From Paragordius varius (Eukaryota > Animalia > Nematomorpha): a stretch of DNA of 15,693 nucleotides. Both the position numbers and the translations under genes were made by a program. Below are positions 4,505 to 15,691 of this stretch, piece by piece (positions within the stretch are counted from its first letter, which is position 1; every line of letters begins with the position of its first letter). The notes under the pieces were generated by a model. That model saw only the letters and a list, made by a program, of their open reading frames with translations, had not been told where the DNA came from and did not search any database. Where the stretch lies: contig OZ176061.1 in the NCBI GenBank assembly GCA_964247055.1, positions 1 through 15,693 of the forward strand, read 5' to 3'.

Positions 4505-5250
4505 GCTAGAAGTCCTTTTTCAAAAAGACTAACTTTGTTACGACTTATCCTTCTAAGGAGTGACGGGCGATATGTGTATAGTGAAGAGTAATTTTCAAAA
4601 ATTTTTTCTTAATATATTTTTAATTTACTTTCAAATCCTAAATTGTTTGTAAGTATTTAACTACAAACTAAATTATAAAATCAGTCCTATTGTGCCCCAC
4701 CAAACTATTATAACACTGTATATTGATTTGAATTGATTTAATAAAATAAATTAAATAATTTCTTTATTTTTTAACAACTATATACAAGAGTTTACATAAT
4801 ATAAGGTTTATAGCGTACTATCTATTTAATTTGGCTAAACCCTTTGATTTAATTCACTACTGCCAATTTTTTAAGTTTCCTTTTTATACTACTATAGTTA
4901 TATGTAAATTCAATAGTAGGGTATCTAATCCTAGTTTTTAATTAACTTTTTCTAAATCAAGGATTTAATATTTTTATTTATAATCAATTTTACCTTTATT
5001 ATAATAAGAAATCCTTTTTAATTTTTACTTAACAAGTATTTTCCCTTTTTGTATAACCGCTAATGCTGGCACAATTATTCTTAAGAGTATTTTACCTACA
5101 AACAGATACCCTCGTTTACGTTATGATGTCTTACTTCACACATGTTGAAAAACAGCTTTACCTGTTAGTATATTTACCTACTTGTGAGTGCTTATAAGAA
5201 TTTAGTAAAATATACTTCATAAATCAAAACTAAATTTCTCTTTATGATGA
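4505..5250 (-). rRNA. rrnS: Small subunit (12S) rRNA; 5' end inferred from the adjacent trnC
   Basis: Minus strand carries GTGCCAGC...GCGGTTATAC (~5052-5073), CATATCGCCCGTCACTCC (~4557-4574) and GATAAGTCGTAACAAAG plus the terminal helix (~4510-4548). The 5' boundary is uncertain. Confidence 0.85.
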
Positions 5251-5283
5251 AAAGGGTATGCCTGTGAAAACAGGCTAGTTTTG
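5226..5283 (+). tRNA. trnI: tRNA-Ile (GAT), mirror copy in the left arm
   Basis: Exact inverted copy of 5340-5397. Confidence 0.55.
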
Positions 5284-5309
5284 AGCTTGCAACTCTTCAC
5301 TATACCCTT
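5251..5309 (-). tRNA. trnC: tRNA-Cys (GCA), D-armless; copy in the left arm of the palindrome
   Basis: AGGGTAT-AGTG-AAGAG-TTGCAAG-CTCAA-AACTA-GCCTG-TTTTCA-CAGGC-ATACCCT. The anticodon stem has only 3 Watson-Crick pairs. Confidence 0.55.
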
Positions 5310-5313
5310 AATT

Positions 5314-5372
5314 AAGGGTATAGTGAAGAGTTGCAAGCTCAAAACTAGCCTGTTTTCACAGGCATACCCTTT
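5314..5372 (+). tRNA. trnC: tRNA-Cys (GCA), mirror copy in the right arm
   Basis: Exact inverted copy of 5251-5309. Confidence 0.45.
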
Positions 5373-5397
5373 TCATCATAAAGAGAAATTTAGTTTT
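5340..5397 (-). tRNA. trnI: tRNA-Ile (GAT), D-armless
   Basis: AAAACTA-AATTTC-TCTTT-ATGATGA-AAAGG-GTAT-GCCTG-TGAAAA-CAGGC-TAGTTTT. It lies downstream of the nad1 stop on the same strand. Confidence 0.75.
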
Positions 5398-5417
5398 GAT
5401 TTATGAAGTATATTTTA

Positions 5418-6341
5418 CTAAATTCTTATAAGCACTCACAAGTAGGTAAATATACTAACAGGTAAAGCTGTTTTTCAACATGTGTGAAGTAAGACATCAT
5501 AACGTAAACGAGGGTATCTACCACGAGCTCACAAAAAATACAAGCAGGGGAGTATGAAATATCATGATATTTCATACTCCCCTGCTTGTATTTTTTGTGA
5601 GCTCGTGGTAGATACCACGAGCTCACAAAAAATACAAGCAAAAAATATAATAGCTATGTATTCAGCTATGAATACAACTGCAAATACTCCTGAATATATT
5701 TCTACATTAAATCCGGATACTAACTCTGATTCTCCTTCTATTAAGTCATAAGGGGTTCGATTTGTCTCTGCTAAAGCACACATTAACAGTAAAGCTATTA
5801 GGGGTACTAGTACCCCTAATAGCTTTACTGTTAATGTGTGCTTTAGCAGAGACAAATCGAACCCCTTATGACTTAATAGAAGGAGAATCAGAGTGAATAT
5901 TAAAACTAACTCATAAGATACAGCCTGAGTTAAAGCTCGATATCCACCTAGCAAAGAATATTTAGAATTTGATAATCACCCAATAAACAAAATTATGTAA
6001 ACACCTAACCCTAACATCACCATTACAAATAATATCGTAAAATCCATTATTAGAGCGAAAGATGCTTGGGTTAATACAACTTCGAAAAGGACCAAATAAA
6101 GTCCTAGTGATAGGACTGGTGCAGCCATTCATAGACGCAGTAAAACTATTCTCAAAAAGAAGCTTCTTTTTGAGAATAGTTTTACTGCGTCTATGAATGG
6201 CTGCACCAGTCCTATCACTAGGACTTTATTTGGTCCTTTTCGAAGTTGTATTAACCCAAGCATCTTTCGCTCTAATAATGTAAAAAAGGATATACCCACC
6301 AAAAGAGATGCTTGGGTTAATACAACTTCGAAAAGAACCAA
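5418..6341 (-). CDS. nad1: NADH dehydrogenase subunit 1 (307 aa; start TTG 6341 abutting trnL2, or ATT 6344)
   Basis: Motifs [44 protein letters not shown] and WARGSYPRLRYD. TAG at 5418-5420 and the frame is continuous in table 5. Confidence 0.93.
5513..5640. repeat. nad1 palindrome 5513-5616 (104 bp) plus an overlapping hairpin 5583-5610/5613-5640
   Basis: Centre TCATGA at 5564/5565. Direct repeat 5519-5546 = 5613-5640. Confidence 0.93.
5723..5894. repeat. Perfect 172-bp palindrome in nad1
   Basis: Centre ACTAGT at 5808/5809. Confidence 0.95.
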
Positions 6342-6406: not shown

Positions 6407-6666
6407 TTTTATAGTGGGTCACTGTTAATACCCGCCCCCCACCCCATCCTTACGTCCTTCTCTCCCCTCGTCTTCCTCTCTCCTTTCGTCACACTCGTCC
6501 GTTCACTCGTAAGATATCTTTCTATTATATACTCTTTCCTTATTCTTGTTATCTAGTATGCTCAATATCCAGTATGTACAGAGGTGGTCCTCGTCAGGCC
6601 CGAAAAAATTTAGGTGATGGTATACTATGAATATGGTTCCCCAAAATTCATGCACCCTTATCAATA
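6407..6666. promoter_or_regulatory. Non-coding region (candidate control region part) with a C-run and a polypyrimidine tract
   Basis: No gene found between trnL2 and trnV. It has CCCGCCCCCCACCCC at 6431-6445 and a pyrimidine tract at about 6446-6500. Regulatory function is inferred. Confidence 0.55.
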
Positions 6667-6724
6667 ATTATGGTGTTCTATTTTCTTTATGTAACAAAGA
6701 TGTTTTTAATTAAACTAACCATAA
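6667..6724 (-). tRNA. trnV: tRNA-Val (TAC), T-armless
   Basis: TTATGGT-TA-GTTT-AATTAA-AAAC-A-TCTTT-GTTACAT-AAAGA-AAATAGAAC-ACCATAA. Confidence 0.85.
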
Positions 6725-7448
6725 ATAAATACAGATTTTTTTTATTCTATATTATTTATGTTAAAATCTTGTCCGTCGGACAAGATTTTAACATAAATAA
6801 ATACAGATTTTTTTTATTCTATATTATTTATGTTAAAATCTTGTCCGACGGACAAGATTTTAACATAAATAAATACAGATTTTTTTTATTCTATATTATT
6901 TATGTTAAAATCTTGTCCGTCGGACAAGATTTTAACATAAATAAATACAGATTTTTTTTATTCTATATTATTTATGTTAAAATCTTGTCCGACGGACAAG
7001 ATTTTAACATAAATAAATACAGATTTTTTTTATTCTATATTATTTATGTTAAAATCTTGTCCGTCGGACAAGATTTTAACATAAATAAATACAGATTTTT
7101 TTTATTCTATATTATTTATGTTAAAATCTTGTCCGTCGGACAAGATTTTAACATAAATAAATACAGATTTTTTTTATTCTATATTATTTATGTTAAAATC
7201 TTGTCCGTCGGACAAGATTTTAACATAAATAAATACAGATTTTTTTTATTCTATATTATTTATGTTAAAATCTTGTCCGTCGGACAAGATTTTAACATAA
7301 ATAAATACAGATTTTTTTTATTCTATATTATTTATGTTAAAATCTTGTCCGTCGGACAAGATTTTAACATAAATAAATACAGATTTTTTTTATTCTATAT
7401 TATTTATGTTAAAATCTTGTCCGACGGACAAGATTTTAACATAAATAA
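6720..7448. repeat. Tandem array of 10 x 72-bp units (plus a partial unit), each with a 24-bp-arm hairpin
   Basis: The unit repeats exactly every 72 bp from 6721 to 7440. The only variable base is the hairpin centre (T,A,T,A,T,T,T,T,T,A). Confidence 0.97.
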
Positions 7449-7449
7449 T

Positions 7450-8982
<1,533 letters not shown>

Positions 8983-12461: not shown

Positions 12462-12470
12462 TTTATCACT

Positions 12471-13820
12471 ATGATAACTATTATAAAGAATGCCGCTGCT
12501 GTTATTTTTATTAAGCCTGAACCTCAAGCTCAAATTATCATCATATGTCTTAGATGAATAGTTTTAATATACCCTTTTTCAAGAAAATGGTTATTTTTTG
12601 ATAGCTCATCTATTGAGATTTCTAATCTTTTCAATAGAAATATTATATCCATTACTATAGTATTACTATTTTTATGAGTATCTCTAATAGTGACGCTATT
12701 AATCATAACCAGTATTAGTGAGACATTTAAACCTCTAATTAGAGGTTTAAATGTCTCACTAATACTGGTTATGATTAATAGCGTCACTATTAGAGATACT
12801 TTGGGGTTTTTTATTATGTTTGAGTTTTCTCTGTTACCCATCATGATGATAATTTGAGCTTGAGGTTCAGGCTTAATAAAAATAACAGCAGCGGCATTCT
12901 TGCTAATCTATACTAGATTAGCAAGAATGCCGCTGCTGTTATTTTTATTAAGCCTGAACCTCAAGCTCAAATTATCATCATGATGAGGAGTATCCATCAT
13001 GATGATAATTTGAGCTTGAGGTTCAGGCTTAATAAAAATAACAGCAGCGGCATTCTTTATTAAGCTGCCTATTTATATCTTTCACTCATGGTTACCTAAA
13101 GCACATGTAGAAGCTTCTACATGTGGGTCTATGCTGCTAGCAGGTAGACTATTAAAGCTAGGGTCATTTGGCCTCTTTAAGAGTCTACCTGCTAGCAGCA
13201 TAGACCCACATGTAGAAGCTTCTACATGTGGGTCTATGCTGCTAGCAGGTAGACTAATTTCTTCTTTTATCATAGTCTTACTAAGTGATGGAAAAATAAT
13301 AATTGCTTTTTCAAGAGTAACACACATAACATTAATAGCGTTAGCTTTTTTTGGGGTTTCTACCTCCGGGTTTTACTCCTTATTGTACGTTAGTTTATCT
13401 CACGGATTTACAAGTTCTTGTATATTTTTTATATTTTTTTTAATCTACAACAAATTGTTAACGCGTAACCTTATATTAATTAAATCATCTAATAAGTATA
13501 TAACCTCGTTATTATTTTATTATGTGTACTTTATCATTTTAATATTTAACGCAGGGTGCCCGCCTTCTTTAAATGTAGCAGGTGAAATTATAACTTTTTG
13601 AGCTGTGATAAATGTTTCAAACTATTGAAGTTGATTTTTAATTGTTGGATCTATATGCTCATTATTAATAGGTTTACTTTTATTCATTAACACTATAAAT
13701 ATTACAAATCACTCCTTAGGTTCTCAGAATTTCTCACAAACTTTCATATCAACAAACTTTATTCTATTTGTTTTTTTTATAGCCCATTTACTCCCTTGAT
13801 TGTTTCTAAACTGAATTTAA
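12471..13820 (+). CDS. nad4: NADH dehydrogenase subunit 4 (449 aa)
   Basis: FFIMFEFSLLP, HSWLPKAHVEA, SLSHGFTSS, NAGCPPSLN. Continuous in table 5, ATG to TAA. Confidence 0.95.
12677..12800. repeat. Perfect 124-bp palindrome in nad4
   Basis: Centre TAA|TTA at 12738/12739. Confidence 0.95.
12839..13057. repeat. nad4 double inverted repeat (12839-12910/12914-12985 and 12923-12985/12995-13057) with a further copy at 12486-12544
   Basis: Direct repeat 12839-12901 = 12995-13057. 12486-12544 = 12923-12981. Confidence 0.94.
13102..13256. repeat. nad4 compound repeat (inverted repeat 13102-13150/13182-13230; palindrome 13182-13255)
   Basis: Direct repeat 13102-13151 = 13207-13256. Confidence 0.95.
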
Positions 13821-13838
13821 CCCGATTTATCCTACTAA

Positions 13839-13897
13839 GTGAAGTGAGCGTAAATTGTGATTTTACTAAATCTGATTATTATATTCAGAACTTCACA
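13839..13897 (+). tRNA. trnH: tRNA-His (GTG), D-armless
   Basis: Acceptor GTGAAGT/ACTTCAC, anticodon arm GTAAA-TTGTGAT-TTTAC, T-arm TCTGA/TCAGA. It lies between nad4 and nad5. Confidence 0.85.
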
Positions 13898-14041
13898 ATC
13901 CTAATTTGAATAAAGTCGGATAACTGATATATGATGGGTATAAATATCAAACATATTACTGTGAGTGTTGCACTCACAGTAATATGTTTGATATTTATAC
14001 CCATCATATATCAGTTATCCGACTTTATTCAAATTAGGATT
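13897..14041. repeat. 71-bp-arm hairpin at the nad5 5' end
   Basis: Arms 13897-13967/13971-14041 with a 3-nt loop. Confidence 0.95.
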
Positions 14042-15691
14042 TTCTCCTTTATAATAACTAACTTAAAGTTTGTTGATATATACATTAACTATGACCCTTT
14101 AAGATTTTCTTTTATATTAAATTTAATAGTAGTTTTTTTAATAATTATTCTTTACAGATTTTTTTACATAGAAAAATCTGACTTTAAACTAGGGTTTATG
14201 GGTGTAACTAGTGTTTTCTTAATTTCTATAGTAATTATAGTTCTGTCTTCTTCCCTACCAGTTATTTTACTCGCTTGAGACTCACTGGGCCTTTCCTCTT
14301 TTTTATTAGTTTTGTTTTACAATAATTACTATAGAGAAAATAAAAGACTGGTCACATTAGTTATAAACCGTTTAGGTGACGCTTGCCTTATCATCTCTTT
14401 TCCTTTAATTTTTTCAAAATATGACGCTAATATAAGTTTAATAAATTCATTAATATGTAATTTTACATCTGTGGACTCCTTAATTCTAGTATTACTAATC
14501 ACAGCTTCTTTTATAAAAGCAGCTCAACTACCATGAAGTGCATGGCTGCTAGCAGCCATGGCTGCTCCAACACCTATTTCTTCACTTGTTCACTCTAGCA
14601 CTTTGGTGTGTGCAGGAGTCATTCTTTTCACCAAAGTGCTAGAGTGAACAAGTGAAGAAATAGGTGTTGGAGCAGCCATGGCTGCTTTAGTTTACATTAG
14701 TTTTATAATATCATCTATCTCGTCTACAAAAAATTTTGATCTAAAAAAAATCATTGCTCTAAGTACCATAAACCAAATATCTTTCTTATTAATTATCACA
14801 ATAAGTGTAAACCAGTATTTTATAGTATTTCATATGATTAGCCATGCTGTTTTTAAAAGAAATACTTTTATAATAGCCGGTTGCTTATTTCATAACTCAA
14901 AAAGATCACAAGAATACCGTTTTAATTCATCTAATAGAATTAGTAATTATTCAGTATTCCTACAGAGAGCTTTTATATCTCTATACTCTCTATCAAGACT
15001 GCCGTGATCGATAGGTTTTTACTCAAAGGAGCAAACTTTGTCTTCATCTTTATGAAAGGAGACTGCTCCTTTCATCTCATTGATGCTATTCTTTTTCATT
15101 TTTTACTCTTTTTTCTACTCATATCTTATTATAGCATCAATGAGATGAAAGGAGCAGTCTCCTTTCATAAAGATGAAGACAAAGTTTGCTCCTTTGAGTA
15201 AAAACCTATCGATCACGGCAGTCTTGATAGGGGTTTTTAGAATTTCAGGAGCAAACTTTGTCTTCATCTTAATAAGTCCTTCTCTCCCCTCGTCTTCCTC
15301 TCTCCTTTCACTGTCTCTAATTTTAAGACCTTTTATCACCGGGAAGTATATCTACTTGAGACACTTTCAACCGTTTTCAAGGATAGTAAATACAAATTAC
15401 TATCCTTGAAAACGGTTGAAAGTGTCTCAAGTAGATATACTTCCCACCCTTCTAGGATTTTCATTATTATCTCTACTCTGTCTCAGAAAAAAGAGAGTAG
15501 AGATAATAATGAAAATCCTAGAAGGGTGGGAAGTATATCTACTTGAGACACTTTCAACCGTTTTCAAGGATAGTAATTTGTATTTACTATCCTTGAAAAC
15601 GGTTGAAAGTGTCTCAAGTAGATATACTTCCCACCCTTCTAGGATTTTCATTATTATCTCTACTCTCTTTTTTCTGAGACAATTATTTTAA
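13931..15691 (+). CDS. nad5: NADH dehydrogenase subunit 5 (586 aa from ATG 13931; in-frame ATC at 13898 also possible)
   Basis: [63 protein letters not shown]. Continuous to TAA 15691. Confidence 0.95.
14541..14686. repeat. nad5 inverted repeat 14551-14608/14629-14686 plus a 20-bp palindrome 14541-14560
   Basis: 58-bp arms with a 20-nt loop. Confidence 0.93.
14990..15270. repeat. nad5 inverted repeat 14990-15089/15131-15230 plus a 24-bp third copy at 15247-15270
   Basis: 100-bp arms with a 41-nt loop. 15027-15050 = 15247-15270. Confidence 0.93.
15341..15681. repeat. nad5 3' triple overlapping inverted repeats
   Basis: Arms 15341-15389/15397-15445 (49 bp), 15341-15479/15494-15632 (139 bp) and 15479-15576/15584-15681 (98 bp). 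Confidence 0.94.

Follow-up and report, generated by a model that had tools for sequence, protein, structure and literature searches.

Palindromes that lie within protein-coding genes are a known feature of the mitochondrial DNA of hairworms. Mikhailov et al. (2019, NAR, PMC6649704) counted 110 perfect inverted repeats across the mitogenomes of four hairworms, in which both arms code for conserved protein and the length of the gene is unchanged. Overlapping inverted repeats were found to yield direct repeats, as was shown for nad1, and phase 3, in which third codon positions pair with third positions, was the most constraining arrangement and was not seen above 65 bp. The palindromes were confirmed by nuclease enrichment, complex I activity was also confirmed, and template switching was proposed as a possible origin. 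Inverted repeats are likewise abundant (55-60 per genome) in the mtDNA of Parachordodes pustulosus and Gordionus alpestris, where nad4 is one of the genes whose hairpin regions occupy positions common to the species (PMC10380579).

Two more distant systems, both as cited in PMC6649704, share part of these features. Quasi-palindrome template-switch mutagenesis of the Ripley type gives length-neutral perfecting of palindromes, several simultaneous base changes and paired changes, and the locus described here would resemble it in these respects, although in our case the mechanism is one that we infer and the three arms, of 37-56 nt, are longer than the classic short tracts. The palindromic bypass elements of Magnusiomyces capitatus also place palindromic DNA within mitochondrial protein genes. 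These elements are insertions that are skipped in translation, whereas the arms in nad4 replace protein in frame without adding length, and ND4 requires them for its full number of helices.

The stretch of DNA analysed here (the window) is a complete contig of 15,693 bp that carries the usual mitochondrial genes and is part of a 110.6-Mb animal assembly. Its five best ATP6 matches all belong to Nematomorpha (Gordionus, Parachordodes, Chordodes and Gordius; 53-59% identity, E 1e-29 to 1e-34), and the next taxon follows at 44% (E 1e-21). Moreover, the arrangement and strands of the protein-coding genes equal the Gordioida arrangement of PMC10380579, shared by P. pustulosus and G. alpestris. By its ATP6 and gene arrangement the host is identified as a nematomorph mitochondrial genome, that of a gordiid horsehair worm. 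A tRNA search with ARAGORN in bacterial mode gave none and Rfam gave only one. The word search with a 193-aa piece of nad4 returned 26 partial ND4s, none of them named as a hairworm, within a length window of 0.55-1.75 times the query that excludes full-length ND4; the matches did not exceed 45% identity over the greater part of the query, apart from P0025 with 77% over 20%.

The window holds 115 inverted-repeat pairs with arms of up to 208 nt, many of them 100% identical with zero spacer. The perfect inverted repeats of the genome number 72, the nad4 site being one of these, and similar compound repeats occur in many genes of the window at no common position. The first-pass annotation had compared the locus with insect ND4 and had considered the duplication unusual; the host is a horsehair worm, and in a lineage for which overlapping repeats have been published (PMC6649704), and in a genome with this number of perfect inverted repeats, the duplication is not an unusual one.

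The nad4 site is very probably a compound coding palindrome in a gordiid mitochondrial genome, and as such an instance of the published Nematomorpha phenomenon. It adds an example to what is known of hairworms and is no new kind of system. With the palindromes of PMC6649704 it has in common the in-frame arms, the unchanged gene length, the competing hairpins, the direct repeat and phase-3 arms of less than 65 nt. It differs in the species, which shares no more than 53-59% ATP6 identity with the five hairworms returned by the search and is therefore none of these, and in that the repeat has a palindrome at its core, from which a second dyad is seeded. The nuclear copies available here go beyond the earlier work in that they inform on age and covariation. 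In the available text of PMC6649704 the site from TMH7b through TMH9 of ND4 is not described, and in its supplement nad4 is present in expression tables only, without repeat coordinates. The genomes of PMC10380579 are smaller (14,013 bp in P. pustulosus) and their shared nad4 hairpin is given without coordinates by which it could be equated with 13102-13256. The three-armed form is known from one assembly together with the indirect evidence of its nuclear copies.

Geometry of the nad4 repeat and codon coupling

Two overlapping inverted repeats with the middle arm in common lie within the nad4 reading frame (Table 1), closely spaced and with long perfect runs, as in the coding palindromes of other Nematomorpha. 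One has arms of 56 nt (13102-13157 and 13175-13230; 98%, one mismatch) around a 17-nt loop, and the other is a palindrome of zero spacer with 37-nt arms that are 100% identical (13182-13218 and 13219-13255). The corresponding dyad centres lie near 13166 and at 13218/13219. Because arms 1 and 3 are each the reverse complement of arm 2, a direct repeat of 50 nt results (13102-13151 and 13207-13256, 100% identical) at an offset of 105 nt or 35 codons, and a peptide of 16 amino acids, HVEASTCGSMLLAGSL, is encoded twice in the nad4 frame under the invertebrate mitochondrial code. Each copy of the direct repeat opens with the 24-nt palindrome X (13102-13125 and again 13207-13230). The longest perfect inverted runs at the site are of 49 nt (31-nt gap; this run includes 13182-13230) and 37 nt (0 gap).

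A direct repeat of this length is far beyond chance: in 200 shuffles of nad4, by base or by codon, exact direct repeats reached 15-16 nt at most. As single-stranded DNA the repeat stretch folds with -73.7 kcal/mol (z = -20.5), and the fold of 13095-13262 is dominated by the hairpin of arms 1 and 2. The two hairpins compete for arm 2, the one of arms 1+2 folding with -67.9 kcal/mol and the one of arms 2+3 with -43.1 kcal/mol, while palindrome X alone gives -8 kcal/mol (z -6).

All three dyads belong to phase 3 as Mikhailov et al. define it, that is, codon position 3 pairs with position 3 and position 1 with position 2, and a codon that begins with n1n2 stands opposite one that begins with comp(n2)comp(n1). 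The residues that are partners across the dyads are His-Cys, Val-Thr, Glu-Ser, Ala-Ala, Gly-Pro, Ser(TCN)-Asp, Met-Met and Leu(CTN)-Ser(AGN). By this rule GSMLLAGSL is mirrored as SLPASSMDP. Palindrome X reads H-V-E-A-S-T-C, in which H pairs with C, V with T, E with S and A with itself. The near-invariant Pro of AHVEAP, found in 16/16 other aligned sequences and in the mammalian chains, is Ser in this worm, and the change from HVEAP to HVEAS can be explained by the fact that Glu and Pro cannot be partners; X forces a Ser opposite the Glu.

A compound repeat of the same build lies upstream in nad4, at 12839-13057. A fourth copy (97%) of its element of ~65 nt was seen at 12480-12544, oriented as the middle arm (12917-12981) and in a different reading frame; this copy is probably located in the nad4l-nad4 spacer or at the very start of nad4.

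Table 1. Coordinates of the nad4 repeat, its neighbour and the short nuclear fragments that match one arm
Feature	Position	Strand	Content
nad4 open reading frame	12462..13817	+	invertebrate mitochondrial code; ND4 chains matched by phmmer, E about 1e-23; homologues carry PF00361; true start probably downstream of 12462
Neighbouring nad4 compound repeat, same build	12839..13057	+	arms 12839-12910, 12914-12985 and 12995-13057; direct repeat offset 156 nt
Palindrome X copy 1, 12+12 nt	13102..13125	+	(A)HVEASTC, end of TMH7b; His equivalent to mouse H220
Arm 1, X+Y forward	13102..13157	+	HVEASTCGSMLLAGSL(LK), genuine TMH7b and start of TMH8; model helices 24-31 and 35-54
Single-copy spacer and hairpin loop	13152..13181	+	LKLGSFGLFK; Lys aligned to mouse TMH8-K237
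Arm 2, Y'+X, reverse complement of arm 1	13175..13230	+	(K)SLPASSMDP + HVEASTC, end of TMH8 and TMH8-9 loop; residues 55-62 mostly non-helical
Direct repeat copy 2, X+Y	13207..13256	+	HVEASTCGSMLLAGSL, N-terminal half of TMH9; aligned to ~253-270 of mouse; single helix 63-86
Arm 3 of zero-spacer palindrome	13219-13255		within copy 2; dyad centre 13218/13219
ND4 peptide predicted to cover arms 2 and 3			SLPASSMDPHVEA
Nuclear fragments matching one arm	C5:1804400-1804560, C4:506369-506466, C2:6769755-6769859, C6:3314767-3314829, C11:398394-398473
Nuclear fragments matching one arm, further	C3:8829920-8829964, C3:2272086-2272128, C9:1916218-1916260, C5:12620705-12620738, C3:7967789-7967822

Placement of the arms in ND4

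The stop-free piece used as nad4 query (13020-13598, 193 aa) was translated with table 11, in which TGA, a Trp codon in the worm, is a stop, and AGA was read as R and ATA as I, which in the worm are S and M. Against the ND4 of solved complex I, mammalian and Drosophila, residues 10-191 of the query matched residues 201-380 of the chain with only two offsetting gaps of 2 residues (phmmer), and no large gap was required in an alignment of 17 ND4 sequences. The residue matches to mouse are K15 with K206 (TMH7), H29 with H220 (TMH7b), K46 with K237 (TMH8), K92 with K283 (TMH10) and E189 with E378 (TMH12), the functional roles of ND4 residues being taken from PMC10396290. The Lys residues of TMH7, TMH8 and TMH10, the Glu of TMH12 and the His of TMH7b expected in ND4/NuoM (PF00361) were all found, and the Glu of TMH5 was recognized by eye in the upstream translation. 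H29 is the His of the first HVEA, K46 belongs to the spacer motif LLKLG and is invariant among the 17 sequences, and K92 lies in DGK. All invariant ND4 columns of this alignment are kept in the worm sequence.

Exactly beneath arm 2 and the start of arm 3 the same alignment has 20 consecutive columns that are free of consensus, and the LLAG of copy 2 falls at the 'L.GG' motif of TMH9 in other animals. By the alignment, arms 2 and 3 fill the loop between TMH8 and TMH9 together with the first half of TMH9, where conservation in this part of ND4 is lowest, and copy 2 stands in place of the N-terminal half of the poorly conserved TMH9. An AlphaFold model of the fragment (mean pLDDT 71) has helices at 24-31, 35-54, 63-86 and 91-111. 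In this model copy 1 forms a helix-break-helix (TMH7b/TMH8) and copy 2 one continuous helix (TMH9). Foldseek placed ND4 chains at the top of its matches to the model with TM 0.41-0.49 and rmsd 8-11 A, and because of this mediocre fold match the model was used for helix boundaries alone and its 3D packing was left aside.

The canonical proton-pumping lysines lie outside the duplication, K206 of TMH7 upstream of it and K237 of TMH8 in the single-copy spacer. The copied residues of note are the TMH7b His (H220) and the neighbouring Glu, whose second copies stand at the beginning of TMH9, where the alignment varies most. The open frame, the kept invariant columns and a divergence biased to third positions (see below) are indirect support for a gene that is expressed as a working ND4 protein.

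What the first-pass annotation had claimed for the protein is supported in part by these results. The anatomy it had given, X-Y-spacer-Y'-X-Y with X as a 24-bp palindrome and a 50-bp repeat at 105 bp, was confirmed. Its duplication in frame and without change of length is borne out by the open frame, the 35-codon offset and the two offsetting 2-residue gaps, and an alignment needing a large gap, which it had named as an observation that would speak against the claim, was not obtained among the 17 sequences. The second HVEA copy does serve as the next helix, as had been proposed, the model helix 63-86 being TMH9. The description of the copied peptide as a catalytic motif is not supported; the canonical lysines are not copied, only the TMH7b His and its neighbouring Glu.

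Nuclear copies of the repeat

The site is included in two nuclear copies that differ in age. The young one (C2:8694432-8696795) corresponds to window positions 12736-15391 with about 94% identity, and the old one (C3:5980859-5981349) to 12481-13354 with about 71-77% identity. Both have a single X-Y that joins the upstream flank of arm 1 to the downstream flank of arm 3, and the spacer segment 13152-13181 is absent from both. Both also collapse the 156-nt compound repeat to one unit, and the losses in each amount to exactly one 105-nt period and one 156-nt period. Slippage between direct repeats that already existed on either side of a hairpin would be expected to remove exactly one period. The collapsed form cannot be the working or the ancestral gene because the invariant Lys of TMH8 is missing from it. 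No alternative, unique TMH9 sequence was found in the nuclear copies of the assembly, and other palindromes of the same mitochondrial contig are retained in the nuclear copy. Although both copies are collapsed and neither is three-armed, they support the reality of the repeat and suggest that it predates the old copy.

The nuclear copies also inform on how the arms change. Palindrome X is perfect in the young copy, and 11/12 of its pairs are kept in the old one. Among the mitochondrial, young and old versions, 3/12 pairs of X differ on both sides, with one unpaired cell in the comparison, and all three are synonymous third positions. Two simple palindromes retained in the young copy (13897-14041 and 14990-15230) differ from their mitochondrial versions by 5 paired substitutions and 2 paired deletions, each of which leaves the arms complementary, against 5 changes confined to one arm (2 and 3, respectively); over the simple palindromes of the young copy the one-arm changes number 6. 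By this comparison the arms of both palindromes are judged to evolve in concert. It is possible that the paired changes took place in the nuclear copies and not in the mitochondrial lineage. One of the pairs, A-T/G-C, is the same in the old copy as in the mitochondrion, and the change at it is accordingly assigned to the branch that leads to the young copy. Downstream in nad4 the differences between the mitochondrion and the young copy are distributed 21:9:2 over codon positions 3:1:2, and from this third-position bias it follows that much of the divergence accrued under purifying selection on nad4. The paired changes fit conversion from arm to arm and selection on the stem equally.

Both ends of the young copy were observed at hairpin centres. 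Its start corresponds to 12736-12741, the centre of the 12677-12800 palindrome, and its end to 15391, in the 7-nt loop of the hairpin 15341-15389/15397-15445. These positions suggest that the mitochondrial DNA broke at the tips of hairpins, either before it was inserted into the nuclear genome or in the course of the insertion. In addition, many short nuclear fragments of 33-160 nt (83-100% identity) each match one arm of the palindromes at 12677-12800 or 12839-13057 (Table 1), and three of them end at 12904-12910, beside the loop 12911-13. They may be mitochondrial insertions of the length of an arm, or else a single dispersed repeat in many copies.

Origin of the arms and other repeats of the genome

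A fold-back artefact of assembly or amplification was the explanation favoured at first. Chimeric reads, or a graph mis-traversal at the 24-nt palindrome, would have overwritten the true TMH9 with arms 2 and 3; the many inverted pairs of zero spacer in the window superficially resemble fold-back products, and sequencing coverage and PCR are both known to suffer from the palindromes of hairworms (PMC6649704). It was dropped on the frame and length checks, the nuclear copies and the literature, and is now regarded as very improbable. The frame is open through all arms and the protein length agrees with the homologues, an artefact could not have produced the conserved LLKLG motif that the spacer encodes, and the young and the old nuclear copy are both collapsed precisely at the limits of the repeat, without an alternative unique TMH9. 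Moreover, further palindromes of the contig are found in the nuclear copy, and in other hairworms such palindromes were confirmed by nuclease enrichment (PMC6649704). The same nuclear copies could be taken in another way, with the collapsed form as the functional or ancestral state and the extra 105 nt skipped at the RNA or translation level, in the manner of the Magnusiomyces bypass elements, or carried in a defective gene. That both copies are without exactly one 105-nt and one 156-nt period would agree with this, and palindromic inserts are indeed bypassed in translation in yeast mitochondria, as cited in PMC6649704. Yet the deletion of 13152-13256 removes the invariant TMH8 Lys and about one and a half helices, and ND4 would be 35 residues shorter than every homologue. 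RNA-seq of another hairworm gave no systematic difference between cDNA and DNA (PMC6649704), the third-position-biased divergence is that of a nad4 under purifying selection, and direct repeats that flank a hairpin are classic substrates of slippage deletion, PCR jumping across such hairpins having also been reported (PMC6649704). We find it barely credible that the collapsed form is the functional or ancestral one.

A selected role of the repeat would be a third possibility, in which the mutually exclusive hairpins of arms 1+2 and arms 2+3 act as an attenuator-like switch for replication pausing, transcript processing or the translation of nad4. The two alternative folds are both strong (-67.9 and -43.1 kcal/mol) and palindrome X is preserved by compensatory changes. 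Such changes are however predicted equally by hairpin-templated conversion without any function, similar compound repeats are found in many genes of the window at no common position, and the hairpin of arms 1+2 is dominant in the fold of 13095-13262. In the published comparison life stages were without a difference in expression (PMC6649704). A switch of this kind is considered very unlikely, and a compound coding palindrome is the reading that is retained.

The arms of this compound palindrome may have arisen by length-neutral fold-back template switching that perfects quasi-palindromes. In a first step the dyad centred near 13166 would have been perfected, with arm 1 copied across, and since arm 1 opens with the palindrome X, arm 2 closes with another X. 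The added X would then have provided a new dyad centre at 13218/13219, from which a rightward extension replaced the start of TMH9 by Y and came to an end at 13255/13256. The same template-switch process may afterwards keep the arms identical, as concerted evolution, and selection on the protein would decide where the arms can spread, that is, over the variable TMH8-9 loop and TMH9, with the lysines left outside.

It is possible, if somewhat doubtful, that the coding palindromes of hairworms spread in general by such a self-seeding and length-neutral conversion cascade, in which the new copy of a palindromic core acts as the centre of a further dyad, and this dyad is written over the adjoining part of the gene. 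In nad4, half of TMH9 would have been replaced by TMH7b/TMH8 sequence. The repeat would be ancient, older than the nuclear copy of ~71-77% identity, and would have been kept perfect through covarying synonymous third positions, while in the nucleus three-armed units would quickly collapse to one copy. The site shows how far a membrane protein can tolerate being written by the symmetry of its DNA. The loop and the start of TMH9 in a proton-pumping subunit are dictated by the reverse complement of a neighbouring conserved motif, at the cost of one near-invariant Pro. The nuclear copies can serve as dated fossils that point to an old repeat, to paired synonymous changes in the stem and to a collapse by one period outside the mitochondrion.

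Three other repeats of the genome were observed. Between nad1 and cox1, at 6576-7595, there is a tandem array of ~10 near-identical copies of a 72-nt unit that decays at both ends and in which adjacent units carry complementary arms of 49-52 nt; it is a likely control region. The repeat at 15479-15681 has arms of 98 nt and is scored as phase 3 by the assigned frame, and it would surpass the reported phase-3 ceiling of 65 bp unless the coding sequence of nad5 truly ends upstream. The largest perfect palindrome of the genome is at 5104-5519, near the end of nad1 and the rRNA region, with arms of 208 nt and zero spacer, and it exceeds the maximum of 284 bp reported in 2019.
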